Positions 6,406 through 27,951 of a DNA stretch of 27,951 nt are shown here, one piece after another. The notes under the pieces are model-generated. The model was not told the DNA's origin. It ran no database searches and saw only the letters and a list, made by a program, of their open reading frames with translations. Position numbers and translations under genes: made by a program. The stretch is from Macrostomum lignano (taxonomy: Eukaryota), in NCBI GenBank assembly GCA_002269645.1, contig NIVC01005044.1, forward strand, positions 1 through 27,951, in the 5' to 3' direction. Position 1 is the stretch's first letter. Each line of letters begins with the position of its first letter.

Positions 6406-8128
6406 ATGGAGTCGCCATTGATGAAGCAGAAGTCAGCCGCGCAGCCTCCGCAGTTTCTTGCCGGGCTGCTTCGCCTGCCAAGCCGGCCGAAGCTGAACCA
6501 GCAGCACCAGCTGCAGCGTTCGTTCTGTTGCCATGGCAACAGCGTCTCTAGCGACGGCAAGTTTTTCGGCCGACCATTGGAACTGCAGCCAACAACGGAG
6601 GTGCCGGGACTTGGCGCGGTGCCAGCCATCCTGGCCGCCTGCTGTGACCATCTGGCCAGTCACGTGACAGACGAGGGCCTGTTCCGCGTTGAGGCGCCGC
6701 GGTCGCGCCTCGTCGAGCTGCGTCGTCAACTCGATGCCGGCGCCGGGGTCGGCGAAGCGACGCCGCCGAGGGACGTCGCCTGCGCTCTGAAGGCGTGGCT
6801 CCGCGAGCTGCCCGAGCCGCTGCTGCCGCCAGCGATCGCCCAGGAGCTCGCCGAGGCTGCCGCTGTCGGTGTTGCCGACGACGATGGGGCTCGAGCTCGC
6901 GACCTGCTGCGCCGGCGATGCCGACCTCCGGCCGTGTCGCCAAGCCAACTGCGGGCGCTGCGGCATCTGTGCGAATTTCTGGCCAAGGTGAGGCAGCTGC
7001 GAATTCCATTTCTGATTTTTCAGTTCTCTAACAATTCCTTTGTTTGACTCTAATTAATTCCTCCTTTCTCAACCCCATCAATCACCTGGCCAGGTGGCTC
7101 GGCACTCCGCCTCCAACCGCATGGACGCTGACAATCTGGCCACCTGCCTCGGGCCCTGCCTTCTGCGACACGTGGGCGCAGCGGCTGCCGCCTCCGCAGC
7201 CTCGCCGTTGCTGCCGCCGGCTTCGCCTCGAGACGCCGTTGCCCGGCTGAACGCCGCCGCCGCCTTGCTGGTCCGGCATCACCAAGCGCTCGGCGCCATC
7301 GACTCGGTGACAGCGGTGGAGCCTCCGCCTCCGGCTGTTGAGGCTGGGAAGCGCGGACGGAGCGGCAGCTGCAGCGGCAGCGGCGGCTCCTTTGCCGCCC
7401 TCCGAGCCGCTGTCGGCCGCTTCGCCAGCAGGTCGCGCTCGCGCAGCCCTGGCAGCCGGCGCGGCCAGGCATCTCCGTTCTCGGCGTCGTCGGCATCGTC
7501 GACAGCGGCGGCTCGGGCCCCGTTGGCCACCTCATTGCGCAACCTGGTGGCCGCCGCCGCCGCTGGCAGGCGTGCCGCGCCGCTCATCGGCGGCCGCCGT
7601 CCGTCAGCGCAGAGTCCCGCCGCGACGGTTGCTGCAGACGCCGTCCCGGCCGAGCCCGACGCCGCCGAGGGCCGGCGGTTCCGGCAGTTTCTGCTGAGCC
7701 GGCTTGGCGGCCAGGAACCGCCAAAGTCGCCCAGCTCGTCCAGCTCTGCCTCGCCGCCTTCGCTGACTTCGCCGTCCTCCCCGCCGTCCAGTCTGGAAGT
7801 GTCGACGCCGCCGTCTCGGTGCCGTCCCGGTGATTCTCGCCGACGGCGCCTCCTGCGATGTCGCCGAGTTGGCGGTGGTCGCCGCGGATTCGACGAGTCG
7901 CCGTCCAGCGGCGGCGGCGGCAGCGGCTTCTCGCCCCGCGACAGCCTGCGCGCCCTCCGGCTTCGGGGAGTTCGTCGGCAGAACGGCGGCGGCAGCGGCG
8001 GCAGCGGCGGCAGCGGTAGCGGCGGAGTCGGCCGGCGCTGGCCGCGGCTTCTGATCTCGCCGTCGTCCATGAAGGCCCGCCTGCTTCGGTCCGAAGGCCT
8101 GCTGAGCTCCGCTCGGTTGAAGCCTTGA
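6406..8128 (+). CDS. ARHGAP11A: Rho GTPase-activating protein, ARHGAP11-like; join(6406..6987,7094..8128), 538 aa; N-terminal RhoGAP domain plus Ser/Gly/Arg-rich tail
   Basis: Motifs GKFFGRPL, VPAIL..CCDHL..H...EGLFR (arginine finger codon 6685-6687), PPRDVACALKAWLRELPEPLLP and, after splicing AAG|GTGAGG (6988) to cctggccag|GTG (7094), FLAKVARHSASNRMDADNLATCLGPCL. The pattern follows ARHGAP11A as recalled (GKIFGVP...EGLFRK...[22 protein letters not shown]...NKMDSSNLA). RhoGAP family is certain; subfamily is a by-eye call. Confidence 0.9.
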
Positions 8129-8460: not shown

Positions 8461-9129
8461 GCTGCTTCTCCCCACTGAGCTTCAGTTGGTGCTGCTTCTC
8501 CCACTGAGCTTCAGTGGGTGCTGCTGTTCCCCCTCCTGAGCTTCAGTGGGTGCTGCTGTTCCCCCTCCTGAGCTTCAGTGGGTGCTGCTGTTCCCCCTCT
8601 TGAGCTTCAGTGGGTGCTGCTGTTCCCCCTCCTGAGCTTCAGTGGGTGCTGCTGTTCCCCCTCCTGAGCTTCAGTGGGTGCTGCTGTTCCCCCTCCTGAG
8701 CTTCAGTGGGTGCTGCTGTTCCCCCTCCTGAGCTTCAGTGGGTGCTGCTGTTCCCCCTCCTGAGCTTCAGTGGGTGCTGCTGTTCCCCCTCCTGAGCTTC
8801 AGTTGGTGCTGGTGTTCCCTCCTGAGCTTCAGTGGGTGCTGCTGTTCCCCCTCCTGAGCTTCAGTGGGTGCTGCTGTTCCCCCTCCTGAGCTTCAGTGGG
8901 TGCTGCTGTTCCCCCTCCTGAGCTTCAGTGGGTGCTGGTGTTCCCTCCTGAGCTTCAGTGGGTGCTGCTGTTCCCCCTCCTGAGCTTCAGTGGGTGCTGC
9001 TGTTTCCCCTCCTGAGCTTCAGTGGGTGCTGCTGTTCCCCCTCCTGAGCTTCAGTTGGTGCTGCTTCTCCCACTGAGCTTCAGTGGGTGCTGCTGTTCCC
9101 CTCCTGAGCTTCAGTGGGTGCTGCTGTTT
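8461..9129. repeat. 32-bp minisatellite (CCCCCTCCTGAGCTTCAGTGGGTGCTGCTGTT)n, about 21 copies
   Basis: Tandem unit read directly; period 32 (for example 8521 and 8553). Confidence 0.97.
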
Positions 9130-10132
9130 CAAAGGTTTTTTCATCCGTGCACTGAAACGGATATAGAACTTGATATAGCGAATTAATCATTGACTGGGTG
9201 CCTTTATTTGCCTTCAGATTTTTCAACTGTTTTTCTCTTAGCATAAGAAAACTTGAAGTCGCTCGCTATAGTTCGGCCTAAACTGTTTACCTTCGTAATC
9301 AAGGGAAACTGATGAAGGGAGCAGCATCCAGCTTCTCCCAGACTGGCCCGCCACTTGCCGAATAGAGCCGTCTGATAGATTTGTCTCCCCGGGGAGTCCG
9401 TAATCCCGACACCTATTCACTGTCCCCAAGCAATTCCCTATTCAGCCCATTGACTTTTTATTTCACACCCGTGCTGGGGTGGGCGCTGCGGGACTGTTGG
9501 CTTCCACTTCACTGATCCTCTGAGCAAACGAATTAAAGTAAATGGATAATTTATCCCCGAACCAGTTTGATTGCGCAACGGGTCCTGCGGGTCTCTGGGC
9601 GGTTTTGAGGAATTAAATCTCTTTTTTTCCTCCTAACCCCATCTTCTGTAAGCAGACTGATTGCTCCCTCCCAGAGTTCCATTCCTGCCAGGTGGGTCAG
9701 GGGGCCGGGAGCTGACATCTGCTTGCTCGGGAAGGGGTTGCGTCACCGCTCGACTTCTGGCGGGAATAAATCTGGGGCTTGGGGGGCTGCTTCTTTTTTG
9801 CAGGTGAAAATGGGATTTCTGCCTGAATTGGGCTGGGGATCTCAGATCGGAGAAGGTTAAAGCTGCGCTGCCGACTTTTCTCCCCTAATATTATTGTTGC
9901 TAAGGCGAGCTGCGGCCTCGCAACTGTTGCGGGTGGTCCCGGCTGGCCGGGCTGGGGCTGGGACTGCCTGGCAATCGGACACCGGCCGTCTCATCTTTCC
10001 TCCGGCTGCGCGCATCTGCGCCTGCCTGCTTTTTTAGGGTTGCGCTGCCGCGCTGAGCTCGGGTTTCCTCCCGGCCCCAACCAGTGGAGCGAAAGTTGGT
10101 GCCGACTGCGGCTGACTTTGCCTGGCCTTGCC

Positions 10133-10217
10133 GTGTCTGTCTGTCTGCCTGTCTGTCTGTCTGTCTGTCTGTCTGTGTCTGTCTGTATGTCTGTCTGTCT
10201 GTCTTTCTGTGTGTGTG

Positions 10218-10249
<32 letters not shown>

Positions 10250-10317
10250 CATGTCTGTCCATGTCTGTCTGTCTGTATGTCTGTCTGTCCATGTCTGTCT
10301 GTCCATGTCTGTCTGTC
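10133..10317. repeat. (TGTC)n microsatellite with interruptions
   Basis: Read directly; source of the TDRQ/CLSV ORFs. Confidence 0.97.
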
Positions 10318-10798
10318 ATTCTGCATATCTATCTAATTGCGTTTTATCAATTGCTGCCGTGTCCCAGCAATTAAATGCAGTTAAAATAAAGTATACTGTT
10401 GTTTTTCACTTTATTACTAAGCTATTCACACGGCAGTAAACACCCGCAGCCCAGCTCACATGAGACAACCCAGCTCTCCATTTCACCAATTCCACAATCC
10501 GATGCGAACATGTTGTGTTGGCCGCATTGTTTATGCATGCATTGTAAATCAAGTGGCTGGCTGGGTGGCACAGGGCTGCCTTACCAATTAATTAATTGGC
10601 CAAGTTTGTGCTTTCCCTGGCGTGGGCAACAAATGAAACCCGATCCACTGCTATCTCCCTGGCTTCCCGAAGGCCGCAAGTGTGCGGGCCACTTCGTAAA
10701 GCAGACACTTTCAATTGTTCACTTTGAAAGATGTGTTCACTTCATAACCAGTTAGCAATTTTTGCAAACACCAACAAGCTTCAATCTTTCGATTGCAG

Positions 10799-10897
10799 GA
10801 GCCTCAGCTGCCGGCTGTGGGGCCGCTGCTGGAGCTGGAGGAGCTGTTCCCGCTGGAGCAGATCTGGTCTCAGCAGGGCGACTGGCTGCTCCCCTAG
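10799..10897 (+). CDS. Possible terminal coding exon EPQLPAVGPLLELEELFPLEQIWSQQGDWLLP* of an unidentified gene
   Basis: Acceptor tcaatctttcgattgcag ending 10798; 33 codons to TAG with the CTG/GAG/CAG codon bias of the real exons in this window; upstream exons uncertain. Confidence 0.33.
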   Translation, partial: EPQLPAVGPLLELEELFPLEQIWSQQGDWLLP

Positions 10898-11540
10898 TGA
10901 CCCCGGCTCGGCTGGGTCCGTGTTCGCTGTTTTCAATTCTGTTTTTGTTTGGAGTTCAGATGCGTTTAGGCTTTGCCAACCGGACTGGTTGATTTTATCC
11001 AGGTAGGAAAATTCCGTTTTAATTCCTCTTGTTTGCTGGCATTTCGGCTGTCATTGCGGCTCTCCCTGTCTTCTAGAAGCGGCAGATGTTCTCAGCTGAT
11101 GCATTTCTGTTAATCGCCAACTTTTTGAGAAAAAAAATTCAAACTCGTTTTTGTTAATCTGGTCTGTAAAAATATTTAGCAAAAGTTATATTATATGTAT
11201 TGTTATTAAACAGTGCATTTCTGCCAGCAATGCTTCACAATGGCGTACATTTCACACTGGCACGCAGCCTTCCAGTTTAAACGCAATTATCGAAATTCTC
11301 TATTTCTCTCATCATTTTTGAGTTTTCAGTTTCTCATCCCGCTGCCTTGTAGCCAGTCGGACATCAGGCCCTGCTCGGTTCCTATTTGATTAGATAGGTT
11401 TATTAAGACAAATAAACAGTTTATGTAAGCCTGCCCGAACTCTTTCCCGGCTTTGGGTTCGGCTGCTTTTTTACTTTTTTTGAATGTTGGTCTTGCTGAG
11501 ATCTTCTTTTAGCTTTACCTGCTAGTGTGGGTTTAGAGAT

Positions 11541-12111
11541 GATTGCTAGTCTAGCCAATCATGGATGCGGGATTAGAGTGGATTGCTAGTCTAGCCAATC
11601 ATGGATGCGGGATTAGAGTGGATTGCTAGTCTAGCCAATCATGGATGCGGGATTAGAGTGGATTGCTAGTCTAGCCAATCATGGATGCGGGATTAGAGTG
11701 GATTGCTAGTCTAGCCAATCACGGATGCGGGATTAGAGTGGATTGCTAGTCTAGCCAATCACGGATGCGGGATTAGAGTGGATTGCTAGTCTAGCCAATC
11801 ATGGATGCGGGATTAGAGTGGATTGCTAGTCTAGCCAATCATGGATGCGGGATTAGAGTGGATTGCTAGTCTAGCCAATCATGGATGCGGGATTAGAGTG
11901 GATTGCTAGTCTAGCCAATCATGGATGCGGGATTAGAGTGGATTGCTAGTCTAGCCAATCATGGATGCGGGATTAGAGTGGATTGCTAGTCTAGCCAATC
12001 ATGGATGCGGGATTAGAGTGGATTGCTAGTCTAGCCAATCATGGATGCGGGATTAGAGTGGATTGCTAGTCTAGCCAAATGGATGATTAGAGTGGATTGC
12101 TAGTCTAGCCA
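11541..12111. repeat. 40-bp minisatellite (GATTGCTAGTCTAGCCAATCATGGATGCGGGATTAGAGTG)n, 13 near-perfect copies plus partial copies
   Basis: Tandem unit read directly; two copies carry CACGG in place of CATGG. Confidence 0.98.
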
Positions 12112-12181
12112 AAGTGAATAAACGATATTGAATTACTAATCTATTCTTTTTCTCAAATCTAATTTTCAGCTGCGGTCGCCC

Positions 12182-13880
12182 ATGGAAACGCAGGACTCGA
12201 CGGCGAGGGCGGCTGATTTGCCACGGCAGGTGCAGCTGCGGCCCGGCAGGCCGGCGGAGGATGCGGAGTTTGTGGCGCTGTGCGTTCGCGACTTGGCGGT
12301 CAGCCACGAGGGCATGCTGCCGTTCTGCCACATGGGCGCCAGCGACCACTTTCGGGTGCTGCAGTCCGGCCTGGCCCGTCTTCTGGTGGCCGAGGCAGCC
12401 GGACGGCCGGCCGGATTCGCGCTGTACACCCGGTGCCACCTGGACAGGCAGCCTAGGCCAGGACTCTACCTGCAGGCTGTGTACGTGTGCGAGGACTACC
12501 GGGGCTGAAGGTGAGAGCGATCAGTGAGGCTGTTATGATGTGCTTAACTAGCTACTTGTAGTAATAAGAGGCACACTTCTAGTAGTAGTAGTACTACTAA
12601 TACTAATACTACTACTACTACTACTACTGCTACTACTACTGCTACTACAACTACTACTACTAATACTACTACTACTTGCAGGTAGGCAAGTCTCTACTCG
12701 TGGCTCTGGCTCGCCAGGCCTTGGCAACCGGCTGCGACCACATCAAGCTGATTGTGCACACAGATAACGAGGCTCTGTCCTGGTACCAGCGCATTGGCTT
12801 CCAGGTGCTCACAGAGACCGAGGGGGTCGCCTTTTTTGAGATGAATGACGTGGACTTTGTTGCTGGCCTGGTGGCCGCAGCCGAGCAGCCGCTGCCAGAC
12901 GGAGCCAGCCTGCGCCTGCGGCCCTGCGACGGCGCCGACGGTAGGCGATTCGAACTTCGGACTTCCGGCTGCGACTGTCGCCTGTTTGGCGCCTCCGAGC
13001 TCAGCTACTGCATGTGGGAGGGGGAGGCGGTGCAGGTGAGAGCTCAGCTACTGCATGTGGAGGGGAGGCGGTGCAGGTGAGAGCTCAGCTACTGCATGTG
13101 AGAGGGAGAGGCGGTGCAGGTGAGAGCTCAGCTACTGCATGTGGGAGGGGGAGGCGGTGCAGGTGAGAGCTCAGCTACTGCATGTGGGAGGGGGAGGCGG
13201 TGCAGGTGAGAGCTCAGCTACTGCATGTGGGAGGGGGAGGCGGTGCAGGTGAGAGCTCAGCTACTGCATGTGAGAGGGAGAGGCGGTGCAGGTGAGAGCT
13301 CAGCTACTGCATGTGGGAGGGGGAGGCGGTGCAGGTGAGAGCTCAGCTACTGCATGTGGGAGGGGGAGGCGGTGCAGGTGAGAGCTCAGCTACTGCATGT
13401 GGGAGGGGGAGGCGGTGCAGGTGAGAGCTCAGCTACTGCATGTGGGAGGGAGAGGCGGTGCAGGTGAGTGCTCATAGGAGGCTTGAGCACAGGAGATGCA
13501 GAAACCCGTCAGCTTCCACTGCCAACCCCCAGATCGACTTGTCGGCCGAGAGGCCGGTCTGCGCTGCCGCATCGGAGTGCGGCGCCGTCAGCTCCGCCTC
13601 GCTGAAGTGCCTGATGGGCCGCCTGCTGCAGCTGGCCGCTGCCGACAAGCCCACCCTACCGTCGCCGCATATCGTGTGGGTTGACACCGTCGCCAACCGA
13701 CCGACTTCCGGCGGACTCGATGACCTGCTGATGCGCGCCGGCTTCGAGAACAACACGGCCAATGAAGGCTGGCTGATCTGCCTGCTGGCCGGCCGGCCGC
13801 TGCACCTGCTGGCCAACAGGCCGCTGAACTGCCGCCTGCACCCGGAGCTGGCCGGCTGCCCGGATTCACTGTCTGACTGA
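12182..13880 (+). CDS. Tandem-GNAT gene 1 (SSAT/SAT2-like domain + degenerate GNAT domain); join(12182..12510,12682..13035,13533..13880), about 343 aa if a 1-nt deletion near 12501-12505 is repaired; otherwise a pseudogene
   Basis: VQLRPG, LLVAE..GRPAGFALY, GLYLQAVYVCEDYRG, VGKSLL, HIKLIVHTDN...WYQRIGFQVLTETEGVAFF match the SSAT-family pattern (SAT2 LTEAEGWHFF). Donors at 12511 and 13036; acceptors end at 12681 and 13532. Exon 1 is 329 nt with in-frame TGA at 12506-12508. Confidence 0.78.
12580..12676. repeat. (TAG)4 followed by inverted (CTA)n microsatellite in gene 1 intron 1
   Basis: Read directly. Confidence 0.9.
12997..13467. repeat. 43-bp minisatellite (GAGCTCAGCTACTGCATGTGGGAGGGGGAGGCGGTGCAGGTGA)x11 made of the last 13 codons of gene 1 exon 2 plus its splice donor
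   Basis: Units start at 12997, 13040 (41 bp), 13081, 13124, 13167, 13210, 13253, 13296, 13339, 13382, 13425. Confidence 0.97.
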
Positions 13881-13886
13881 GAGAGA

Positions 13887-14298
13887 TGTGAGAGTCCTGA
13901 TCCCCACTGTGAGAGGCCTGATCCCCACTGTGAAAGTCCTGATCCCCACTGTGAGAGTCCTGATCCCCACTGTGAGAGTTCTGATCCCCACTGTGAGAGT
14001 CCTGATCCCCAATGTGAGAGTCTTGATCCCCACTGTGAGAGTCCTGATCCCCACTGTGAGAGTCCTGATCCCCACTGTGAGAGTCCTGATCCCCACTGTG
14101 AGAGTCCTGATCCCCACTTTGAGAGTCCTGATCCCCAATGTGAGAGTCCTGATCCCCACTATGAGAGTCCTGATCCCCATTGTGAGAATCCTGATCCCCA
14201 CTGTGAGAGTCCTGATCCCCACTTTGAGAGTCCTGATCCCCATTGTGAGAGTCCTGATCCCCAATGTGAGAGTCCTGATCCCCACTGTGAGAGTCCTG
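13887..14298. repeat. 21-bp minisatellite (TGTGAGAGTCCTGATCCCCAC)n, about 19-20 copies, directly after the gene 1 stop
   Basis: Read directly; source of the HSGDQDS/VLIPTVR ORFs. Confidence 0.97.
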
Positions 14299-14740
14299 TT
14301 TACTCATTATCTCCTTATCTCTGATCACAGGTCATCTTAGGGTTCGAGTCCTGACTTTACAGTTGGACCAACGCTAATCTTCAGTATTTGATTTACTTCT
14401 ATACTACTATGAGTAGGTTCCGCTTATTCTGGTAATCTTTTATGCAAACTTTAACACAGATCTATCGCTTAGCAGCTCAAACTAAATCGCTGTTTTAATA
14501 TATCCTTTTATGCTTAAATTTTAACACTTACACATTGCTCTAACAGTAGTGCGCTGTGCCTAATCCAGTGTAGCTCTCTTAACGTATCAAGCACTCTACT
14601 AACTGATCGCTTGCTGTGCCTTAATATGTTCAACTTTATTTTCTGACTTTAACCTGTTTCTTAACAGAAGTTTTAGTTTTTTGTGGCACTAACCTACCTC
14701 ACATTACATGCAATGTCCTTGATTCTTGACCCTTGACTAA

Positions 14741-15690
14741 TGAACCATCCTTGTCTCTTATGAACCATCCTTGACTCTTATGACCCATCATTGACTCTTA
14801 TGACCCATCATTGACTCTTATGACCCATCATTGACTCTTATGAACCATCCTTGACTCTTATGACCCATCCTTGATTCTCATGACCCATCATTGACCCTTA
14901 TGACTCATCCTTGATTCTCATGACCCATCATTGACTCTTATGAACCATCTTTGACTCTTATGACCCATCCTTGACTCTTATGACCCATCATTGACTCTTG
15001 TGACCCATCATTGACTCTTATGACCCATCATTGACTCTTATGAACCATCCTTGACTCTTATGACCCATCATTGACTCTTATTAACCATCCTTGACTCTTA
15101 TTAACCATCCTTGACTCTTATGACCCATCCTTGATTCTCATGACCCATCATTGACCCTTATGACCCATCCTTGATTCTCATGACCCATCATTGACTCTTA
15201 TGACCCATCATTGACTCTTATGACCCATCATTGACTCTTATGACCCATCATTGACTCTTATAAATAATCTTTGACTCTTATGACCCATCCTTGACTCTTA
15301 TAAACCATCCTTGACTCTTATGACCCATCCTTGATTCTCATGACCCATCATTGACCCTTATGACCCATCCTTGATTCTCATGACCCATCATTGACTCTTA
15401 TGACCCATCATTGACTCTTATGACCCATCATTGACTCTTATGACCCATCATTGACTCTTATAAATAATCTTTGACTCTTATGACCCATCCTTGACTCTTA
15501 TAAACCATCCTTGACTCTTATGAACCATCCTTGATTCTCATGACCCATCCTTGATTCTCATGACCCATCATTGACCCTTATGACCCATCCTTGATTCTCA
15601 TGACCCATCATTGACCCTTATGACCCTTCCTTGATTCTCATGACCCATCATTGACCCTTATGACCCATCCTTGATTCTTTTGACCCATCC
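14741..15690. repeat. 20-bp minisatellite (TGACCCATC[A/C]TTGACTCTTA)n, about 47 copies, with a 200-bp higher-order duplication
   Basis: Read directly; 15121-15320 matches 15321-15520. Confidence 0.97.
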
Positions 15691-15847
15691 ATGGCAAGAC
15701 GTATTTAACTCACCACAATACACGCAAAATTTACTGTCTGCAGCTAATTCTACTTTTAGTAGGCTGTTGCGCCTAGCAAGTCAAAATGCTTAGAATAAAA
15801 AATTATTATTATTAACAACATCCCGCATTTGCAGTCAGCCGGTTGCC

Positions 15848-17143
15848 ATGGAAACTCAGATACAAATTAGACGCGGCACGGCGGACGACATCGAGGCGGT
15901 GGCCGCGCAGGAGCTGGAGCTGGCGAACAGCCACAATGGCATGCAGCTGTACTGCCGGATCGAGTGCGATGAGCACCACCGGATGCTGCTGGCCGGCCTG
16001 CTCAAACTGCTGGTCGCCGCCGACTGCCAGTCCGGCCGGGTGGTCGGCTTCCTGCTGTACACGCCGTCTTACATGCACAGCCAGCCCGAGCCCGGCTTCT
16101 ATGTGCAGAGCCTCTTTGTGGAGCTGGACTACCGGCGGCACAGGGTGAGGCTTCTTGGGGTCCTCAGTGATTGGGCCGCTGCCTCATTTGGGTCCTCAGT
16201 GACTGGGCCGCTGCCTCATTCGGGTCCTCAGTGATTGGGCCGCTGCCTCATTCGGGTCCTCAGTGACTGGGCCACTGCCTCATTCGGGTCCTCAGTGACT
16301 GGGCCGCTGCCTCATTCGGGTCCTCAGTGACTGGGCCGCTGCCTCATTCGGGTCCTCAGTGACTGGGCCGCTGCCTCATTCGGGTCATCAGTGATTGGGC
16401 CGCCAAATCTCGCTGGACCAACTGCAACTCTGGTTGGCAACCCGCAGGTCGGCCAGTCGCTGCTGGCCACGCTGGGCCGCCTCGCCGCCTCCTCCGGCTT
16501 CGGCCACCTGAAGCTGCTGGTGCAGCGCAGCAACGCGCCGGCCGTGAACTGCTACAGACGTCTGGGGTTCGAATTCCTGAGCGATACGGAGAACATCGGC
16601 TTCTTCGAGCTGTGGCCGGCCAAGTTCGTGAACTCGATGCTTCGGGCGGGTCGCCGGCCGCTGCCCGCCGGCCTCAGCCTGGAGCTGCGGGACTGCGACG
16701 GCCGGCTGTCGGGCGGGCTGGAGGCCGGGCGGCGGTTCGCCCTGACCTGCGCGGCCTGCGACTGCCGCCTTCAGGGCACCGCGGCGCTCACCTACTGCAT
16801 GTGGGACGGCTGCATCATGCTGGCCGACCTGCGGCTGGTGCGGCCCGCCTGCGCCCAGCGGCCCTGCCAGCTGCTGAGCGTCGCCAATCTGAAGCGGCTG
16901 CTGGGCCGCCTGGCACTCAGCCTGGCTGCGTCGCCAAGGCGGCTTTGGCTGGAGGCGCCTCGGCAGCAGACCGAGCTGCACCGGATGCTGCTGCACACCG
17001 GACTGGAGGACTTGGACGGCCGCCACGACGGAGACTGGGTCGTCTGCGCGCTGCGGGGCGCCCAGCTCTGCGGCCTGGCGGAGCGGCAAGTCGCGGATCA
17101 TTTTGTGATTGAGGCCGACTGTGCTGCGCCTGCGATTCTGTAG
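15848..17143 (+). CDS. Tandem-GNAT gene 2 (SSAT-like + degenerate GNAT); join(15848..16144,16448..17143), 330 aa
   Basis: IQIRRGTADD...ELA (SAT1 as recalled: FVIRPATAAD...ELA), LLVA...VVGFLLY, FYVQSLFV..DYRRHR|VGQSLL, HLKLLVQRSNAPAVNCYRRLGF. Donor AGG|GTGAGG at 16145, acceptor cccgcag ending 16447, phase 0, intact frame to TAG. Confidence 0.9.
16158..16404. repeat. 32-bp minisatellite (GGGTCCTCAGTGACTGGGCCGCTGCCTCATTC)n, about 7.7 copies, in gene 2 intron 1
   Basis: Read directly. Confidence 0.96.
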
Positions 17144-17684
17144 TGTGCTCAGCAGTGTGCTCAGCAGTGTGCTCAGCAGTGTGCTCAGCAGTGTGCTCAG
17201 TAGTGTGCTCAGCAGTGTGCTCAGCAGTGTGCTCAGTAGTTTGCTCAGCAGTGTGCTCAGCAGTGTGCTTAGTAGTGTGCTCAGCAGTGTGCTCAGCAGT
17301 GTGCTCAGCAGTGTGCTTAGTAGTGTGCTCAGCAGTGTGCTCAGCAGTGTGCTTAGTAGTGTGCTCAGCACTGTGCTCAGCAGTGTGCTCAGTAGTGTGC
17401 TCAGCAGTGTGCTCAGTAGTGTGCTCAGCAGTGTGCTCAGCAGTGTACTCAGTAGTGTGCTCAGCACTGTGCTCATCAGTGTGCTCAGCAGTGTGCTCAG
17501 CACTGTGCTCAGCCGTGTGCTCAGCAGTGTGCTCAGTAGTGTGCTCAGTAGTGTGCTCAGTAGTGTGCTCAGCAGTGTACTCAGTAGTGTGCTCAGCACT
17601 GTGCTCATCAGTGTGCTCAGCAGTGTGCTCAGCACTGTGCTCAGCCGTGTGCTCAGCAGTGTGCTCAGTAGTGTGCTCAGCAGT
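17141..17684. repeat. 12-bp minisatellite (AGTGTGCTCAG[C/T])n, about 45 copies, starting in the gene 2 stop codon
   Basis: Read directly; 132-bp higher-order duplication (17441 and 17573). Confidence 0.97.
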
Positions 17685-18439
17685 GATGCTGAGTTTATTT
17701 GCAGTATTGTTTGCAGTTTGCACTAAACCCAGCGTTTATAATCTGGTTGTACTGATTTTATCTATCGAACGCTCTTTCACGCAATGGCAATATTTTTTGT
17801 ATTTCAAGTTGTGAGAGAAACTCTTTTGCAAACCTTTTTTAGCCTCTCTGCTCTCCATCTTTGATTGCGGGACATTGCAACCCTTCAAAATGCTTTTGTA
17901 CTTTTGTACAGTATATATATACACTGATTGTACGTATTGCTAGCGACCAGATCCCACACCTTGCTGCTATATCCTACTGCCAAGTCTCAATCCCCTACCC
18001 CCGCACCGGTAAGAAATTCTTTTGTTTGCCCTCAAGTGCAGAGTCTGAGAAGCAGCTCAGAATTGGGAAAGCAGAGTGACGCGCGGGGCTCGCGGAACCG
18101 CCTTTTGTCCAAATAAATTTCCTGCTACCTGTCTGATGCAACTGTTAACAATTCAACTATCCCGTTGTCCCCAATCGGATGTACTTTTATTTTGATTAGA
18201 TTTTATTACCATAAGCAGTACAAATCCTGCGCTGTGCAATAAATTTACTTGTCTGATTAGCTTAGAAAATTGTAATTTTTTTAGCTGAGTGCATCGCTTT
18301 ATTGTATCAAATATCATTAGATATGTTATCCACACAGGCGTGGCAAACTGCAGTTTGTCGTTCGTGTTTTTGTCTGCTCAAGTGATTGTATCATTTTCAC
18401 TGCTATGCCAATGTTTTACAGTTCTCTCTGGTGTCGTGC

Positions 18440-18745
18440 GGGATCTTTTAGGGTGAGATTGTGGGATCTTTTAGGGTGAGATTGTGGTATATTTTAGGGT
18501 GAGATTGTGGGATCTTTTAGGGTGAGATTGTGGGATCTTTTAGGGTGAGATTGTGGGATCTTTTCAGTGAGATTGTGGGATCTTTTAGTGTGAGATTGTG
18601 GGATCTTTTAGGGTGAGATTGTGGGATCTTTTAGGGTGAGATTGTGGTATATTTTAGGGTGAGATTGTGGGATCTTTTAGTGAAATTGTGGGATCCTTAG
18701 GAAGTGAGATTGTGGGATCTTTAGGGAGATTGTGGGATATTTTGG
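18440..18745. repeat. 23-bp minisatellite (GGGATCTTTTAGGGTGAGATTGT)n, about 13 copies
   Basis: Read directly. Confidence 0.95.
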
Positions 18746-18908
18746 TATGATATTTCGGGGTCTTGGATGCAGCTTTCAAAGGATCTTGTCAGAACACATC
18801 TTGAGCACCTGATCAGTGAAATTTAGGCCAGATTTTGCTTTAAAAAATTTACTGGCTAAAACTTTTCATTCGTTTCTGCATCCGTTGCCCTAAAACTTTT
18901 CCAGCAAA

Positions 18909-20016
18909 ATGTCTGTTGCCATGGTGACTGGCAGTTGCGGCCAGCCGGCCCAGCCAGCGCTGCTCATCAGGCAGGGCGCCCCGGAGGACCTCCTGGAGGC
19001 CGCCGAGCTGGAGGAGGAGCTGGCAGCCTGCCATGACGGCATGCAGCTGTACAGCCGCTGCAGCGCCGTCGAGCACCGCCTCATGATGCTGGCCGGCCTG
19101 CTCAGGCTGCTGGTCGCGGTTGCTATGGCAACCGGCCGGATTGTGGGCTTCGTCCTGTACACCGTGTCTCACGTGTCCCAGCAGGACCTGCCAGGCCTCT
19201 ACGTGCAGAGCCTCTTTGTTGACGGGGCTTACCGGAGACACCGGGTGAGTACCGGGTCAGGGATGCTGCGAGTTGTCACTGATTGCAAATGGGAATTATT
19301 TAATCCTGAGCCTCATCATCCATCTACATCCCCACCTGCTGCAGGTCGGCCAGTCGCTGCTGGCCACGCTGGGCCGCCTCGCCGCCTCCTCCGGCTTCGG
19401 CCACCTGAAGCTGCTGGTGCAGCGCAGCAACGCGCCGGCCGTGAACTGCTACAGACGTCTGGGGTTCGAATTCCTGAGCGATACGGAGAACATCGGCTTC
19501 TTCGAGCTGTGGCCGGCCAAGTTCGTGAACTCGATGCTTCGGGCGGGTCGCCGGCCGCTGCCCGCCGGCCTCAGCCTGGAGCTGCGGGACTGCGACGGCC
19601 GGCTGTCGGGCGGGCTGGAGGCCGGGCGGCGGTTCGCCCTGACCTGCGCGGCCTGCGACTGCCGCCTTCAGGGCACCGCGGCGCTCACCTACTGCATGTG
19701 GGACGGCTGCATCATGCTGGCCGACCTGCGGCTGGTGCGGCCCGCCTGCGCCCAGCGGCCCTGCCAGCTGCTGAGCGTCGCCAATCTGAAGCGGCTGCTG
19801 GGCCGCCTGGCACTCAGCCTGGCTGCGTCGCCAAGGCGGCTTTGGCTGGAGGCGCCTCGGCAGCAGACCGAGCTGCACCGGATGCTGCTGCACACCGGAC
19901 TGGAGGACTTGGACGGCCGCCACGACGGAGACTGGGTCGTCTGCGCGCTGCGGGGCGCCCAGCTCTGCGGCCTGGCGGAGCGGCAGGTCGACAGCAACAT
20001 CCTGGTTGCCGTGTAG
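18909..20016 (+). CDS. Tandem-GNAT gene 3 (SSAT-like + degenerate GNAT); join(18909..19244,19345..20016), 335 aa (331 aa from ATG 18921)
   Basis: LLIRQGAPED...ELA, RIVGFVLY, LYVQSLFVDGAYRRHR|VGQSLL. Donor CGG|GTGAGT at 19245, acceptor ctgctgcag ending 19344, 100-bp phase-0 intron, intact frame. Confidence 0.9.
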
Positions 20017-20017
20017 C

Positions 20018-20297
20018 CAGTCTGTAATACTGTCAGTCCGTAATACTGTCTGTCTGTAATACTGTCAGTCTGTAATACTGTCTGTCTGTAATACTGTCAG
20101 TCTGTAATACTGTCAGTCTGTAATACTGTCAGTCTGTAATACTGTCAGTCTGTAATACTGTCTGTCTGTAATACTGTCAGTCTGTAATACTGTCTGTCTG
20201 TAACACTGTCAGTCTGTAATACTGTCAGTCTGTAATAATACTGTCAGTCTGTAATACTGTCAGTCTGTAATAATACTGTCAGTCTGTAATACTGTCT
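20018..20297. repeat. 16-bp minisatellite (CAGTCTGTAATACTGT)n, about 17 copies, directly after the gene 3 stop
   Basis: Read directly. Confidence 0.96.
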
Positions 20298-20686
20298 TTC
20301 TGTGACACAGGCTTTAATACTGAAAGCTTGCAGCTACTACAGACTTGCACTGTCCATATTTCTTCATAATTAATTTGTATTGCGACTTTCTTACTGTATT
20401 GCGATTTGCGATTGCGATGTGTTTTACCTTTACTTCAATCAAGCCAGCTGTCTTCGTTTACAGTTCATCAAGTGCTTTTCCAACCAGTTTTTTTATTCGC
20501 TCGATAATCCTGAGATCATTCCTTTGAGCAGATTTTTCTTGACAACTGATTACAGAATGAATTAGATTTTTTAATTCACCTTTTTATCTATTTTTTTATC
20601 CCGATTTGTTTCTTTGGTATCCTTTTATTTTTACTTTTTCGTAAAGCTTTAGTGGGCAGTAAGTGTAGGCGTAGTTGTAGTAGTAT

Positions 20687-20962
<276 letters not shown>

Positions 20963-21017
20963 CAGCAGCAGCCATATATTTCACCGCCACCCCGAATTCA
21001 TGCAGCTGCCAGCAGCC

Positions 21018-23323
21018 ATGAAGCCCGAATCCTCCACCGCCACCGTGGTGATCCGCTACGGCACGCCGGATGACATGTACCAGGTGACCTGCCACGAGAA
21101 GGAGCTGGCCAAGTGTCACGAAAACATGCTGCAGTACTGCAGGCTGGGCAGCGAGGCGCACCGCCAGATGCTCATGGACGGCCTGTTCAGGATTATGGTT
21201 GCCGAGGCCGAGGGCCGCGTCATCGGATACCTGCTGTACACCCCCTCCTACCTGCTGCGGCACGCTGAGCCGGGCTTCTACGTGCAGAGCTTGTACGTTG
21301 AGCCGCTGTACCGCAGGCACCAGGTGAGGCGTCCCTCTGTGTGATTGCACTGTGAATGCACTGTGAATGCACTGTGAATGCACTGTGAATGCACTGTGAT
21401 TGCACTGTGAATGCACTGTGATTGCACTGTGAATGCACTGTGATTGCACTGTGAATGCACTGTGAATGCACTGTGAATGCACTGTGAATGCACTGTGAAT
21501 GCACTGTGAATGCACTGTGATTGCACTGTGAATGCACTGTGATTGCACTGTGAATGCACTGTGAATGCACTGTGAATGCACTGTGAATGCACTGTGATTG
21601 CACTGTGAATGCACTGTGATTGCACTGTGAATGCACTGTGATTGCACTGTGAATGCACTGTGATTGCACTGTGAATGCACTGTGATTGCACTGTGAATGC
21701 ACTGTGAATGCACTGTGATTGCACTGTGATTGCACTGTGAATGCACTGTGATTGCACTGTGATTGCACTGTGAATGCACTTCTATTTGGGGCTGTGGCAT
21801 AAATTCGCTGCGACTCCAGGCTATCCCACATTTTACTGTAAGAAACAGCATCTCATAATGCTCCACTGCACCCCATAATATCCCACTGCACCCCAGAATA
21901 CCCCACTGCACCCCATATTACCCCACTGCACCCCATAATACCCCACTGCACCCCAGAATACCCCACTGCACCCCATATTACCCCACTGCATCCCAAAATA
22001 CCCCACTGCATTCCATAATACCTTACTGCACCCCATAATACCCCACTGCACCCCATAATACCCCACTGCATCCCAAAATACCCCACTGCATTCCATAATA
22101 CCCCACTGCACCCCATAATACCCCACTGCATTCCATAATACCCCACTGCATTCCATAATACCCCACTGCACCCCATAATACCCCACTGCATTCCATAATA
22201 CCCCACTGCATCCCAAAATACCCCACTGCACCCCACGGTAGCACGGGGCATATTAAGAAGCCATAAATATCCCATACAACCAACCAGACCCGCACCGGCC
22301 CTCCCGCAGGTCGGCCAGTCGCTGCTGGCCACGCTGGGCCGCCTCGCCGCCTCCTCCGGCTTCGGCCACCTGAAGCTGTTGGTGCAGCACAGCAACGCGC
22401 CAGCCGTGAACTGCTACAGACGTCTGGGGTTCGATTTTCTAACCGAGACGGAGAACATCGGCTTCTTCGAGCTGTGGCCGCCGAAGTTTATCACTTCAAC
22501 TCTGCAGGCGGGTCGCCGGCCGCTGCCCGCCGGCCTCCACCTGGAGCTGCGGGACTGCGGCGGCCGGCTGTCGGGCAAGCTGGACACTGGGCGGCGGTTC
22601 GCCCTGACCTGCGCGGCCTGCGACTGCCGCCTGCAGGGCACCGTCGCTCTGACCTACTGTATGTGGGACGGCCCTGTGGCTCAGGTGAGATTTCTAGATT
22701 TCTGATTGGCTCACACCATCTACCCAGTCCAGCTCTGATTGGCTGGCACTATGTACCCAACTCAGCTCTGATTGGCTGGCTCTGTACCCAACTCAGCTCT
22801 GGTGGGCTGGCACTATGTACCCAGCTCAGCTCTGATTGGCTGGCACTATGTACACAGCTCAGCTCTGATTGGCTGGCACTATGTACCCAGCTCAGCTCTG
22901 ATTGGCTGGCACTATGTACCCAGCTCAGCTCTGATTGGCTGGCACTATGTACCCAGCTCAGCTCTGATTCGCACGCTTCCCTTAAACGCTTTCCAGGCCG
23001 ACTTGGAGGCGGTTCGGCCGAGCTGTCCGGCCCGCGGCTGCGCCCTGCTGAACGCGGCCAACCTCCGCCGGCTTTTCGGCCGGCTGCTGCTCACCTGCCT
23101 GCCTGTCCGGCCGGTCCGCCTGTGGCTGGAGGCCGGCCGCCGGGACTCCCGGCTGCGCCAGCTGCTCATCAAGATCGGGCTGGAGGACAGCACGGCCAGC
23201 GAGCTGTGGCACGTGTGCGACCTGTCCGGCCCCGGCCTGTCCGAGCTGGCCGGACGCAGCGTGGCCTGTCCGAGTGTTGGCCGACTGGCCATTGATGCAG
23301 GCGCCTTGACAGCGGAGCTTTGA
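21018..23323 (+). CDS. Tandem-GNAT gene 4 (SSAT-like + degenerate GNAT); join(21018..21323,22310..22684,22997..23323), 335 aa
   Basis: VVIRYGTPDD...ELA, IMVAEAEGRVIGYLLY, FYVQSLYVEPLYRRHQ|VGQSLL, NAPAVNCYRRLGF, YCMWDGPVAQ|ADLEAVRP. Donors CAG|GTGAGG at 21324 and CAG|GTGAGA at 22685; acceptors end at 22309 and 22996; all phase 0; intact frame. Confidence 0.9.
21340..21779. repeat. 11-bp minisatellite (CTGTGA[A/T]TGCA)n, about 40 copies, in gene 4 intron 1
   Basis: Read directly. Confidence 0.97.
21861..22234. repeat. 20-bp minisatellite (CCCCACTGCACCCCATAATA)n, about 19 copies, in gene 4 intron 1
   Basis: Read directly. Confidence 0.97.
22701..22969. repeat. 33-bp minisatellite (CTCAGCTCTGATTGGCTGGCACTATGTACCCAG)n, about 8 copies, in gene 4 intron 2
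   Basis: Read directly. Confidence 0.95.
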
Positions 23324-23486
23324 AGCCCCTGCTTTGTTTTTAGCCGTGTCGTTTTGTGATTGTTTTTGTGTGGCTCACCAAGCACTGTCTATTGATCCTG
23401 TCTGGTTTTAGTTGCTATGCTGGACTCTTTTGTGTTCAGTTTTTATTGCTTATGGTAATACCGATTGATCAAGGATAAAGTCGCTA

Positions 23487-24416
<930 letters not shown>

Positions 24417-25345
24417 CTATTTTTACACTCTGTCAATATTTAAATTATCTGTGTCAAGCTGGGTTTGGTTTACCGCCCAACTCCGCGTCTCACATTCAGT
24501 ACACTTTAGTGCTGGTTGCATATGCTAAGATGCATTTCCACTTGCGGGTGCTCTGAAAGTCTGCAATCTGGTCTAATTTGGCCACTGCTATGTGCGGCAG
24601 ACCCCTCACGCTATTGCCGTACTGTATTAAGCTTTCATCATTGTGACTTGATCTCCCCCTCATGTCTCCGATTCGTAACGTCTGCTCGCTCCCTCTGTGT
24701 CCGATCTGTTGTCACAGGCATTTTTTACCGCGCTCTGACCGTCTTCAATGCGATCCTTTGCGATTTGTGATCCTCAATTTGGGAATTCAATTGTGATTTC
24801 GTCTTTATTTACAATAACTCTTGCTTGCTTTACAATTTTGACTTGGTGATAAACATAATTTCCCCTCTACTGTACTCGTACTTATCTACTAAGTAGTCTG
24901 ACGCGTAATTTTTTCCAAGCTGTGATTTTTATCAATAAATCGACTAATCGCTTAAAATAAGTTCGTCCTGTACTTGTGTGCGACTTTCCAACTTGTTATT
25001 GTTTTGCTTCGAGCTGCCGGAACTACCAAATCTATCAAGAATGAACTCAAAGTTTCTTCAAGTGTTTTGAAAGCACTGGAATGCTAGCCGCGCACTGTGT
25101 GTTTATTTTCTTTAGTTTTGTTCCATGGACTGGCCGGTGTGTCTGGCCGGCGCAACACAGCAAATCTGACAGTCTTGAACTGGGCAAAAAGCGTGTGAAA
25201 GAAAGCGGGAAAAAGCAGAGATTAACAAGCAAGTAGTTAAAGTATTTGAGCGAAATAGCAGTGCGACTCATGAGGATCCCTCATGAAGCTGGCTGAGTCA
25301 GAATGTCACCTGCAGCCTCAGGCGCTGCGGCTGAGGCTGCGATAG

Positions 25346-25759
25346 GATTTTGGGGATTCGATTTTAGGGATTCTAAAATGTGGGATTAGATTTTGGGATT
25401 CTAAAATGTGGCACTCGATTTTGGGATTCTACAATGTGGGACTCGATTTTGGGATTCTAAAATGTGGCACTCGATTTTGGGATTCTACAATGTGGGACTC
25501 GATTTTGGGATTCTAAAATGTGGGACTCGATTTGGGGATTCTAATAAAATGTGGGATTTGATTTTGGGGATTCTAAAATGTGGGATTGGATTTTGTAGAT
25601 TCTAAAATTTGGGATTGGATTTTGGGATTCTAAAATGTGGGACTCGATTTTGGGATTCTAAAATGTGGGACTCGATTTGGGGATTCTAATAAAATGTGGG
25701 ATTGGATTTTGGGATTCTAAAATGTGGGATTGGATTTTGGGATTCTAAAATGTGGGATT
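25346..25759. repeat. About 28-bp minisatellite (GATTTTGGGATTCTAAAATGTGGGACTC)n, about 14-15 degenerate copies
   Basis: Read directly. Confidence 0.93.
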
Positions 25760-25819
25760 TGTTGGGTTCGAATTTGATTTCAGACTGGATTTCGCTTTCA
25801 CCGAACCTCTGGCTGTCAA

Positions 25820-26332
25820 TCAGTTGTCAACCGACTGTCTCAGCGACTCGTCGATGCTGAGCACCTGCGGCCGCAGCCGCTGCCGACCCGGCAGCTGGTG
25901 GTCGGAGCCGGTGCTGGGCAGGCAGAGGCGCCGGGGCTCGCGCTCCACCAGCCGGCCCTGCCGCTGCTGCTCGGCGAGGTGCTGCACGGACAGCCGCTGC
26001 TCGGACCGCGTCAGCGACTGCTGCAGAGGCGGCGAGGACGAGGCGGAGTCCGGGCCTGCGGCATGCTGGCTGGCCTGCCGCCTGACGCTGTGCTTTGCCC
26101 GCTCCTGTTGAGGCTGCTGCGGACCCTCCGGCTCTGAGCGGAGGCTGGTGACCCGGGGAGTTGCCTTCGGCTCCCCGATGAAGAAGCTCTGATGCTGCTG
26201 CGGCTGGTGCGGCTCCTGCAGCGACGGCTGCTTCCTGGGCGTTGACCAGGCCTCGCGCAGGCCGCGGGCTGCCGCGAGCTGCTCCCAGGACTTGGCGAGC
26301 CGCCCGCTGCTGCTGCCGCCGCTTGACGACAT
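25820..26332 (-). CDS. Last (possibly only) coding exon of an unidentified Gln/Ser/Arg-rich protein, 170 aa from ATG 26332
   Basis: Open frame with almost all third positions G/C (CAG, GAG, CTG, CGG); minus-strand acceptor ...gaaaccag|A-ATG (AG at 26335-26334); stop TGA at 25822-25820; no recognisable domain. Confidence 0.7.
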   Translation of the reverse strand: MSSSGGSSSGRLAKSWEQLAAARGLREAWSTPRKQPSLQEPHQPQQHQSFFIGEPKATPRVTSLRSEPEGPQQPQQERAKHSVRRQASQHAAGPDSASSSPPLQQSLTRSEQRLSVQHLAEQQRQGRLVEREPRRLCLPSTGSDHQLPGRQRLRPQVLSIDESLRQSVDN

Positions 26333-26630
26333 TCTGGTTTCTAAAATTTGAGATTTGGGATTCCAGACTAAACCGTTACGACATATAATTTAGGTTTGGG
26401 ATTTGGAATAGTGGGTTCTAGATTTGCGATTTAAAATTAGATTGCGGACAATTATTGTCTTTGTGATTCGAGTTTGAGGTTTGAATTTTTTTAAACCTAG
26501 GATTCGGACTTTGAAATGATGGGCTTTTAGGTATACCTGAGTTGGAGATACAGGATGAGACCAGATACTCTTTGTTGTCAACCTTTGTTGGCCTGTTGTC
26601 AGCCTATCCCAATCCACGGTGTGCAACTCT

Positions 26631-27440
26631 CTGACAGACTCCCTGACAGACTTATTGACAGTCTCATTGACAGACTCCCTGACAGACTTATTGACAGTCT
26701 CATTGACAGACTCCCTGACAGACTTATTGACAGTCTCATTGACAGACTCCCTGACAGACTTATTGACAGTCTCATTGACAGACTCCCTGACAGACTTATT
26801 GACAGTCTCATTGACAGACTCCCTGACAGACTTATTGACAGTCTCATTGACAGACTCCCTGACAGACTTATTGACAGTCTTATTGACAGACTCCCTGACA
26901 GACTCGCTGACAGACTTATTGACAGTCTTATTGACAGTCTCATTGTCAGACTTATTGACAGTCTTATTGACAGTCTCATTGTCAGACTTATTTACAGTCT
27001 CATTGACAGTCTCATTGACAGTCTCATTGACAGTCTCATTGACAGACTTATTGACAGTCTCATTGACAGTCTCATCGACAGACTTATTGACAGACTCCCT
27101 GACGACTTATTGACAGTCTCATTGACAGTCTCATTGACAGACTCACTGACAGACTTATTGACAGTCTCATTGACAGACTCCCACTCCCTGACAGACTTAT
27201 TGACGGTCTCACTGACAGACTCCCACTCCCTAACAGACTCAGTAACAGACTCCCTGACAGACTTATTGACAGTCTCATTGACAGACTCCCTGACAGACTT
27301 ATTGACAGTCTCATTGACAGAATCCCACTCCCTGACAGACTTATTGACAGTCTCATTAACGGACTCGCTGATAGACTCTTAGATAATATTTATGACTACC
27401 TGACGGACTACCTGACGGACTACCTGACAGACTACCTGAT
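26631..27440. repeat. 36-bp composite minisatellite of three 12-bp subunits (GACAGACTCCCT GACAGACTTATT GACAGTCTCATT) that decays to free 12-mers, then (ACTACCTGACGG)x4
   Basis: Read directly; source of the LIDSLIDRLPDR ORFs. Confidence 0.96.
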
Positions 27441-27951
27441 AGAAAACTCGAAGTTCTGTTCCGCCTACCTTGGCAGGCCGCGCGCCAGGAGTCGCCCTCA
27501 GAGTTCTCTAGCCGTTGATGAGCTGCTCACAAAGAAGGATTGATTCGACTGCTGCTGCAGCTGTCGAGCTGAGATGAGGCGTCGCCCGTCTAGGAGTTCA
27601 GCTCCCGCCTCAGGCCGGGCCTTATTAAGCGTATCTTGGGTTGCCGGCAGCCCACAGCCAACCAGAGCCGGCATCCCTGCATCCCGCCTGCCCCAGTGCC
27701 TCCTTCCATTGTGCCCGCAAACTCTCTGCACTGCAATTCGCATTGCAAGCCGCAGCGGCCGTGACCTGTGCTGCTGGGTGGGCGAGGCCGCAGTGAAACT
27801 CCTTCCAGCTTCTCTACCTCATCTGTCTGCGTGTTTTTCTCCGCTCCTCCCCCCCCACCCACCCAAGAGCTGGCGCAATGCGACTTCGCAGACATCTGGA
27901 CTGGATAGAATCCGGACCGACAGGCTCCGAGGCCGACGGCAAGAATTCTTG

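Follow-up and report, generated by a model that had tools for sequence, protein, structure and literature searches.

The window analysed here is the whole contig NIVC01005044.1 (27,951 nucleotides) of the Macrostomum lignano assembly GCA_002269645.1 (Mlig_3_7). Downstream of a RhoGAP gene lie four genes in tandem on the same strand, g1 to g4, which code for SSAT-like acetyltransferases of the GNAT family. Genes g2 and g3 have diverged first exons and a second exon that is identical between them up to shortly before the stop codon. Recurrent interlocus (non-allelic) gene conversion between these two tandem genes very probably explains the shared exon. Exon-limited conversion had been proposed in a preliminary description of the sequence and is supported here by the synonymous divergence (dS) of the individual exons, a permutation test, substitutions shared between paralogues and an older tract in g4.

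Positions 16444-17088 and 19341-19985 (offset 2897) are identical at 645 of 645 positions, confirming the base-for-base match that had been seen by eye. The first mismatches outside the block are found at 16443/19340 on the 5' side and at 17089/19986 on the 3' side. Flanks compared at the same offset match at 12-34%, which is the random level, and BLAST with short words detected no significant similarity between g2 and g3 in intron 1, in the upstream regions or in the downstream regions; introns and flanks are unrelated, as previously described. Chance is excluded as the source of the identity, the calculated probability of 645 identical bases at the divergence of exon 1 being ~10^-87. The two genes are organised as follows (a slash within a sequence motif marks an exon boundary or junction).

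15848-16144, plus strand: g2 exon 1, 99 codons, copy-specific, N-terminal half of the GNAT domain; ATG at 15848, donor AGG/GTGAGG
16145-16447, plus strand: g2 intron 1, nearly all 32-nt minisatellite (16158-16403; Tandem Repeats Finder); left limit of homology
16444-17088, plus strand: identical block copy A, 4 nt of acceptor and 641 nt of g2 exon 2; 645/645 against 19341-19985
17089-17143, plus strand: g2-specific C-terminal tail (Q-V-ADHFVIEADCAAPAIL, then stop); right limit of homology, kept in the orthologous g2 of contig L003 (see below)
17142-17690, no strand: 12-nt minisatellite directly 3' of the g2 stop codon (repeat search)
18909-19244, plus strand: g3 exon 1, 112 codons, copy-specific (protein models P0002/P0009)
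19245-19344, plus strand: g3 intron 1, 100 nt, without repeat, unrelated to g2 intron 1 (BLAST)
19341-19985, plus strand: identical block copy B, 4 nt of acceptor and 641 nt of g3 exon 2 (19345-20016); 645/645
19986-20016, plus strand: short g3-specific C-terminal tail (Q-V-DSNILVAV, then stop; sequence comparison)
20018-20296, no strand: 16-nt minisatellite directly 3' of the g3 stop codon (repeat search)

Gene g2 consists of 15848-16144 joined to 16448-17143 and its spliced product is the annotated protein PAA46119.1/P0001. Exon 2 proper starts at 16448 in g2 and at 19345 in g3, and copy A of the block codes for GNAT motif A/B together with the C-terminal half of the protein. The block opens with the last four intron bases, GCAG. 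A (c/t)gcag acceptor is common to all four genes, which makes these four nucleotides uninformative. The earlier statement that identity starts at the acceptor is correct but says less than it seemed to, the first 69 nt of the exon being identical even in g4. The block closes where a CAA codon faces a CAG codon, a synonymous difference that precedes the divergence of the protein tails (after ...ERQV) by two codons, in agreement with the description that identity ends just before the divergent tails. The conserved protein thus ends at ...ERQV, with the identical block, and the tails beyond it differ in all four genes. In exon 1 the 52 identical residues counted previously are found again, over an aligned length of 99 rather than 93 residues, and the nucleotides are 73% identical over 263 nt.

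Between g2 and g3, exon 1 has a dS of 0.59 and a non-synonymous divergence (dN) of 0.39, with 98 nucleotide differences in 99 codons and a proportion of synonymous differences (pS) of 0.41. The shared block of exon 2 has a dS of 0, with no difference over ~177 synonymous sites, so that the two exons do not have the same dS. A permutation version of Sawyer's test (GENECONV-type, longest shared run) was applied to the g1-g4 codon alignment with 10000 permutations. The g2-g3 pair has an identical run across 255 consecutive polymorphic sites, which was reached by none of the permutations, a significant result in favour of conversion.

Purifying selection together with codon bias might keep exon 2 identical without any exchange of sequence: the exon encodes acetyl-CoA-binding motifs and the extreme GC content at third codon positions (GC3, 0.85-0.94) lowers the number of usable synonymous states. 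Exon 1, however, has likewise a GC3 of 0.85-0.88 and yet the pS given above, and the same exon of g1 has a dS of about 1.0 and a dN of about 0.47 relative to g2/g3, which speaks against constraint of that strength on the sequence. At the pS of exon 1, the calculated probability of finding no difference at the ~177 synonymous sites is ~10^-40. The contrast in dS refutes selection as the only cause, whose probability is vanishingly small. A signature of GC-biased conversion was also considered and found uninformative, GC3 being very high everywhere (0.94 in the converted exon).

A second tract is found in g4, whose relevant features are the following.

21000-21323, plus strand: g4 exon 1; annotated products begin at or near the second ATG, 21018
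22310-22684, plus strand: g4 exon 2; an older, partly decayed conversion tract in common with g2/g3 covers the first 363 nt, 22310-22672 (dS, permutation)
22685-22996, plus strand: g4 intron 2, 33-nt minisatellite; position occupied in g1, empty in g2 and g3 (gene models)
22997-23323, plus strand: g4 exon 3; counterpart of the 3' part of the g2/g3 block, without homogenisation (dS 0.68, dN 0.54 against g2/g3)

Relative to g2/g3, g4 exon 2 differs at 3 of its first 120 nt and at 34 of its first 363; it is 91% identical over 363-367 nt and 35-45% different past 363 nt. The similar zone begins at the acceptor and stops 12 nt before the intron-2 donor. This bears out the earlier observation of 3 differences in the first 120 nt or so, followed by drift and a more distant exon 3. 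The dS of g4 against g2/g3 is 0.79-0.85 in exon 1, 0.205 in exon 2 and 0.68 in exon 3, and runs of 20-23 polymorphic sites shared with g2/g3 were again reached by 0 of 10000 permutations. Gene g1 has a dS of 0.7-1.0 against g2-g4 in every segment, and its pairs are not significant in the same test with 10000 permutations. From these results, g4 exon 2 carries an older exon-bounded conversion tract that has since decayed to ~9% divergence, and g1 takes no part in the homogenisation.

Haplotype types and fidelity of the assembly

Four further contigs of Mlig_3_7 carry this cluster, giving five contigs in total and two haplotype types. The left part of NIVC01004736.1 (L001) has 9 mismatches in 15 kb relative to the window, NIVC01004743.1 (L004) has 4 mismatches in 15 kb and the end of NIVC01001629.1 (L005) has 3 mismatches in 6.2 kb. 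These three were discarded as independent evidence, being of the same haplotype type in the g2-g3 interval (0.03-0.06% mismatches). Only NIVC01000731.1 (L003) is independent of the window contig. Outside coding sequence it is 92-98% identical to the window, and orthologous exons have a dS of 0.01-0.03. This divergence falls within the range published for M. lignano, whose three subgenomes differ by 1.9-2.4% single-nucleotide polymorphisms (PMC10733133).

The contigs of window type have peculiarities of their own. Positions 8923-27951 are 99.6-99.9% identical to L004 and L005, with differences that are almost only 1-nt indels; L005 ends within g3 exon 1 and L004 begins within g1. These contigs seem to represent either a single locus that was assembled in split or duplicate form, or two copies from different subgenomes with near-identical sequence in this region. 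Contig L001 is of window type up to the g3-g4 spacer, then of L003 type through g4, and later window-like again (L001 about 14800-20400, compared with about 20700-26000 of the window and with L003). Through g4 it is 100% identical to L003 in several 400-nt windows, and the first switch of type lies in a region of (GTA)n and 9-12-nt repeats, 20601-20962. Either the contig is chimeric or the haplotype is a genuine recombinant.

L003 shows this mosaic too, and its block stops at the same bases. The exons 2 of its g2 and g3 have two synonymous differences (block positions 16 and 163), both private to L003 g2. Block positions 395 (Val/Leu) and 445 (synonymous) separate the two haplotype types: the window type has G at 395 and T at 445 in g2 as well as in g3, and L003 has C at both sites in either gene. 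When the sites are polarised by g4 and g1 as outgroups, the derived state is that of L003 at 395 and that of the window type at 445. A derived state found in both paralogues of one type was therefore copied between them after the haplotype types split. Conversion is accordingly recurrent and recent, and took place probably in both haplotype lineages.

Within the window contig alone, the same picture of an identical patch in old, diverged surroundings would result from a single recent replacement, whether by exon shuffling or by one conversion, with no ongoing process. This is very unlikely: each haplotype type has a substitution common to both paralogues, which points to conversion after their split, and g4 has a separate older tract. 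Exon shuffling, the alternative raised in the preliminary description, is not needed, and the recurrence in both types argues against one replacement. A single unequal crossover or a recent segmental duplication was ruled out as well. The 3' tails and 3' flanks are copy-specific and each is conserved with its L003 orthologue; because both flanks of the block are copy-specific and orthologously conserved, the shared exon is a non-reciprocal patch.

Mlig_3_7 is a Canu assembly of early PacBio reads that was polished by Pilon with Illumina shotgun reads and STAR-mapped RNA-seq reads (PMC5730564). Polishing with RNA-seq reads affects exons only, and an exon-limited artefact had for this reason to be considered, in which true differences between the exons would have been erased by consensus collapse or by Pilon polishing with multi-mapped Illumina or RNA-seq reads. 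The assembly is also redundant, 36% of its length lying in chimeric scaffolds (PMC10733133). Several observations speak nevertheless against such an origin. The blocks are only 2.9 kb apart, well inside read length, and lie between unique copy-specific flanks. L003 keeps the two differences between paralogues and the two type-specific differences described above, so both copies and haplotypes were resolved. L004 is under-polished: 44 gap openings occur over 15 kb, and two homopolymer deletions fall within g3 exon 2. Despite this it has 0 substitutions between the shared exons of g2 and g3. Models from the independent ML2 assembly (P0008, P0003) have the same exon-2 protein behind g2 exon 1 and behind g3 exon 1. 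Polishing could alter a few single-nucleotide polymorphisms at most and is unable to convert a nucleotide divergence of ~27%, like that of exon 1, into identity. An artefact of assembly or polishing is thus extremely unlikely, and near-identity of at least 99.5% is robust. The concern about consensus collapse voiced in the preliminary description is largely answered by the other contigs, although not formally closed.

Origin of the homogenised exon

The most coherent account is that g2 and g3 are old duplicates (exon 1 dS about 0.6) whose last exon has been overwritten repeatedly, one copy serving as repair template for the other, with its divergence reset to zero each time. The tract would be limited on its 5' side by the unrelated introns, one of which is a minisatellite, and on its 3' side by the last 8-16 codons and the downstream minisatellites, which are likewise unrelated. 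The homologous island would then be the last exon minus the tail in g2/g3, and exon 2 between two non-homologous introns in g4. The homogenised patch would coincide with an exon because homology ends there, and no exon-recognising mechanism is needed. The same process would have acted earlier on g4 exon 2, bounded by its two non-homologous introns, and the tract would have decayed since. Exon 1, at 73% nucleotide identity, and g1 are presumably under the identity needed for conversion. Repair would be templated by DNA, the loss of homology would cause the limits of the tracts and the flanking minisatellites might act as starters of breaks. Conversion between paralogues is usually confined to exons, introns being too diverged to reach the homology threshold (PMC3966223).

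A reverse-transcribed spliced mRNA of one paralogue could also have overwritten the last exon of the other. Such a cDNA donor would in addition explain why g2 and g3 are without an intron that interrupts g1 and g4 at one and the same codon; the length of the sequence is on balance unchanged by its absence. The loss of this intron may have been spread by conversion or may be older than the duplication. In the model of intron loss mediated by reverse transcriptase, priming from the 3' end favours the 3' part of a gene, and the 3' bias of the homogenisation is consistent with it. Homogenisation of coding sequence only, between unrelated introns, is the criterion for cDNA applied by Mullis et al. 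to fungal ribosomal protein genes (PMC6993855). On the other side, a poly(A)-primed cDNA should carry the 3' end of the gene and the 3' untranslated region, and the identity stops short of the stop codon by 55 nt in g2 and by 31 nt in g3, with unrelated 3' untranslated regions beyond. Intron 1 was retained and exon 1 was not converted. The 12 nt directly 5' of the lost-intron site (g2 16810-16821, TGCATCATGCTG) differ at 9 of 12 positions from g4 22673-22684 (CCTGTGGCTCAG), so intron 2 may have been lost otherwise than by a clean excision of the cDNA type. Today neither copy has an intron inside the tract, and its exon limit is equally explained by the loss of homology. Taken together, a cDNA donor is unlikely.

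A locus with variable first exons and one shared constant exon, the design of UGT1A and of the clustered protocadherins, was rejected: no constant exon is used in common, every first exon being followed by a copy of its own. Each gene also has its own stop codon, tail and 3' flank, and the RNA-guided annotation gives separate genes on three contigs.

Some points weigh against recurrent conversion as formulated here, or limit its precision. Conversion after the split of the haplotype types is read from two sites only (395 and 445), and g4, the outgroup used in polarising them, has itself diverged strongly over this stretch of the exon. A single inbred line and a single assembly project supplied all the contigs, and four of the five share one haplotype type in the g2-g3 interval, leaving two independent samples. 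Exact identity of 100%, as opposed to at least 99.5%, rests on the assembled consensus, from which polishing with Illumina and RNA-seq reads could have removed a few true exonic differences. The data also do not separate a cDNA donor from a genomic DNA donor.

The preliminary description went further and proposed that the CoA-binding and C-domain part is held constant while a specificity exon diversifies. The dN/dS of exon 1 between g2 and g3 is 0.65, below 1 and within the range of the family (0.47-0.85, g1 against the others), which does not bear out this adaptive proposal. The analysis gave no evidence of diversifying selection on exon 1, nor of conversion being maintained by selection. The limits of the tract are more simply explained by the end of homology, at minisatellite introns on one side and at unrelated 3' tails on the other. 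Selection for divergence would fit the escape of exon 1 from conversion but is not required for it. An elaborated form of this idea is that the unrelated minisatellite introns and spacers act as homology insulators, and perhaps as break-prone initiators, so that selection can keep a constant CoA-binding and C-terminal module while the acceptor-binding N-terminal halves diverge. This is unlikely. If it were true, it would amount to concerted evolution at single-exon resolution in M. lignano, and to a functional analogue of loci with variable and constant exons that operates by conversion instead of splicing.

The acetyltransferases and their locus

The four proteins match Pfam PF00583 (Acetyltransf_1) above the cut-off (20.7 bits), with scores of 46.1 and 48.9 bits over g2 residues 56-140 and g3 residues 68-153. 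The match crosses the junction of exons 1 and 2, which lies directly before the acetyl-CoA loop (YRRHR/VGQSLL). Exon 1 codes thus for the N-terminal half of the GNAT domain and the shared exon for the CoA-binding half and ~170 more residues. The N-terminal half of GNAT enzymes generally shapes the acceptor site.

The closest chains in the PDB belong to plant NATA1-like/GNAT8, thialysine acetyltransferase and the human diamine acetyltransferase SAT1 (7ovv, 8xj9, 12jc, 2b3u; E 1e-10 to 5e-6) and cover only g2 residues about 5-158. The flatworm proteins have in common with SSAT-like GNATs the motif ...Y(V/L)(Q/E)..FV...YR..G.G..LL and a segment NxxAxxxYxxxGF, but are twice as long, owing to the ~170 extra C-terminal residues. 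The Glu of the YxED strand of NATA1 (FYIEDIFV) is replaced by Gln in g1-g4 (g2 residues 85-93, FYVQSLFV), and the first Gly of the R-x-x-G-x-G/A CoA loop is also replaced (RRHRVGQ). The catalytic mechanism or the activity of these proteins may therefore differ from that of canonical SSAT-type enzymes.

A search with the C-terminal half gave no match in Pfam even at E 10. NCBIfam returned generic GNAT matches only, all far below cut-off. An AlphaFold2 model of g2, built from a 3-sequence alignment, has a mean pLDDT (predicted per-residue confidence) of 45.5, with the C-terminal half below 50, and is unusable. A word-indexed protein search matched proteins from M. lignano only, and an exhaustive profile search of a library of metagenome and genome proteins found no close relative outside this species. 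The best profile matches outside Macrostomum are tandem two-domain SSAT-like GNATs (P0017-P0020 and others; E 1e-25 to 1e-17) of similar length (about 320-340 aa). The end of their second domain aligns weakly (E 0.03) with the last 17 conserved residues of the flatworm proteins (DWVVCALRGAQLCGLAE). Profile-profile comparison (hhalign) of the C-terminal half with the tandem GNATs gave a 19-column match only, with a probability of 13.6%. Both domains of the tandem proteins are clearly GNAT, in contrast to the C-terminal half of the flatworm proteins, which is not detectably GNAT by Pfam. These weak resemblances are a hint that this half may be a degenerate second GNAT-like domain. Judging from the profile searches, g1-g4 appear to form a lineage-restricted, double-length, SSAT-like GNAT family.

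Genes g1 and g4 have three exons, the extra intron splitting what is a single exon in g2 and g3. The spliced models used here are the same as the deposited RNA-guided protein models (P0001, P0009/P0002, P0013). The first and most diverged gene of the cluster has the following position.

12182-13880, plus strand: g1, most diverged GNAT paralogue, first in the cluster; exons at about 12182-12510, 12682-13035 and 13533-13880

Introns and spacers of the cluster each have their own unrelated minisatellite, with periods of 9, 11, 12, 16, 20, 21, 23, 32, 33, 40 and 43 nt. Across 11500-24400 the GC content is 63-75% in exons and goes down to 35-45% in spacers. Intron 2 of g1 (12997-13474) holds about 11 copies of a 43-nt minisatellite whose unit is the last ~33 nt of exon 2 with its donor (…CTACTGCATGTGGGAGGGGGAGGCGGTGCAG/GTGAGA). 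This exon is thus trailed by eleven tandem copies of one splice donor; use of a later one would shift the reading frame, because 43 is not a multiple of 3.

Exon 1 of g1 has a run of G (within 12491-12510) that reads CCGGGGCTGAAG/GT with 4 G in the window contig and in L001. The 4-G version puts a TGA in frame and the annotated product is shortened to 180 aa. In L003, and also in L005, whose sequence is otherwise nearly the same, the run is 5 G long and the g1 reading frame is intact over 343 aa (L001 6655, L003 2407, L005 3541). The run of 4 G is most likely an error of homopolymer length in the assembly rather than the mark of a pseudogene.

The deposited partial coding sequences of g2 (tttgcag/TCAGCC…ATG) and g3 (ttttccag/CAAAATG) begin right after an AG, 4-13 nt 5' of the ATG. 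The regions concerned are 15830-15847 in g2, 18900-18908 in g3 and 21000-21017 in g4. The deposited starts of g4 vary by contig, and only the L003 model begins directly after the AG (tcatgcag/CTGCC). Spliced-leader trans-splicing affects 38.8% of M. lignano genes (PMC5730564), and starts adjacent to an AG are consistent with it; for g4, a true start at the second ATG, 21018, would fit.

Upstream of the cluster, 6406-8128 (plus strand) is a very GC-rich (64-71%) open reading frame. A RhoGAP domain (PF00620) is annotated there and on L001. This reading frame is unrelated to the shared exon.

Parallels and significance

Slightom, Blechl and Smithies reportedly found in 1980 that part of the human fetal globin genes HBG1 and HBG2 is kept near-identical by interlocus conversion. 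The globin genes are also tandem duplicates that have diverged in the rest of their sequence, and the edge of their tract is also at an intronic simple-sequence repeat. They differ in that the converted stretch includes an intron and in that (TG)n was proposed as initiation site; the introns of the flatworm genes are not shared, the tract comprises a single exon and the repeats, 12-43-nt minisatellites, have a putative role. In Caenorhabditis, conversion between tandem paralogues is also seen as mosaic identity, mostly in exons, and the regions that escape it were read as functionally diverging (PMC3966223). Surviving tracts there are typically of 50-200 nt, often with short introns, whereas the flatworm tract is at least about 575-645 nt and spans a whole long exon between wholly non-homologous introns. 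In fungal ribosomal protein genes (PMC6993855) the coding sequence is likewise homogenised, with a dS far below the divergence of introns and with diverged flanks. Those genes are highly expressed, dispersed duplicates homogenised over the whole coding sequence, while the flatworm genes are in tandem and homogenised in the last exon only, with exon 1 and the C-terminal tail escaping.

A literature search found no relevant account of gene conversion in M. lignano. The shared exon is a clean example of a well-known process and opens no new mechanism. Its value lies in being an unusually clean illustration that conversion tracts end where homology ends, in a cluster where three states are found together: the tract of g2/g3 is active, that of g4 is decaying and g1 has escaped. 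With two haplotype types, conversion can be dated against the divergence of the subgenomes. In the neopolyploid genome of M. lignano, trees made per gene and dating by paralogue dS would be wrong unless carried out exon by exon, and short reads or RNA-seq reads from the shared exon cannot be assigned to g2 or g3. The locus also draws attention to what appears to be a lineage-restricted family of double-length SSAT-like acetyltransferases.

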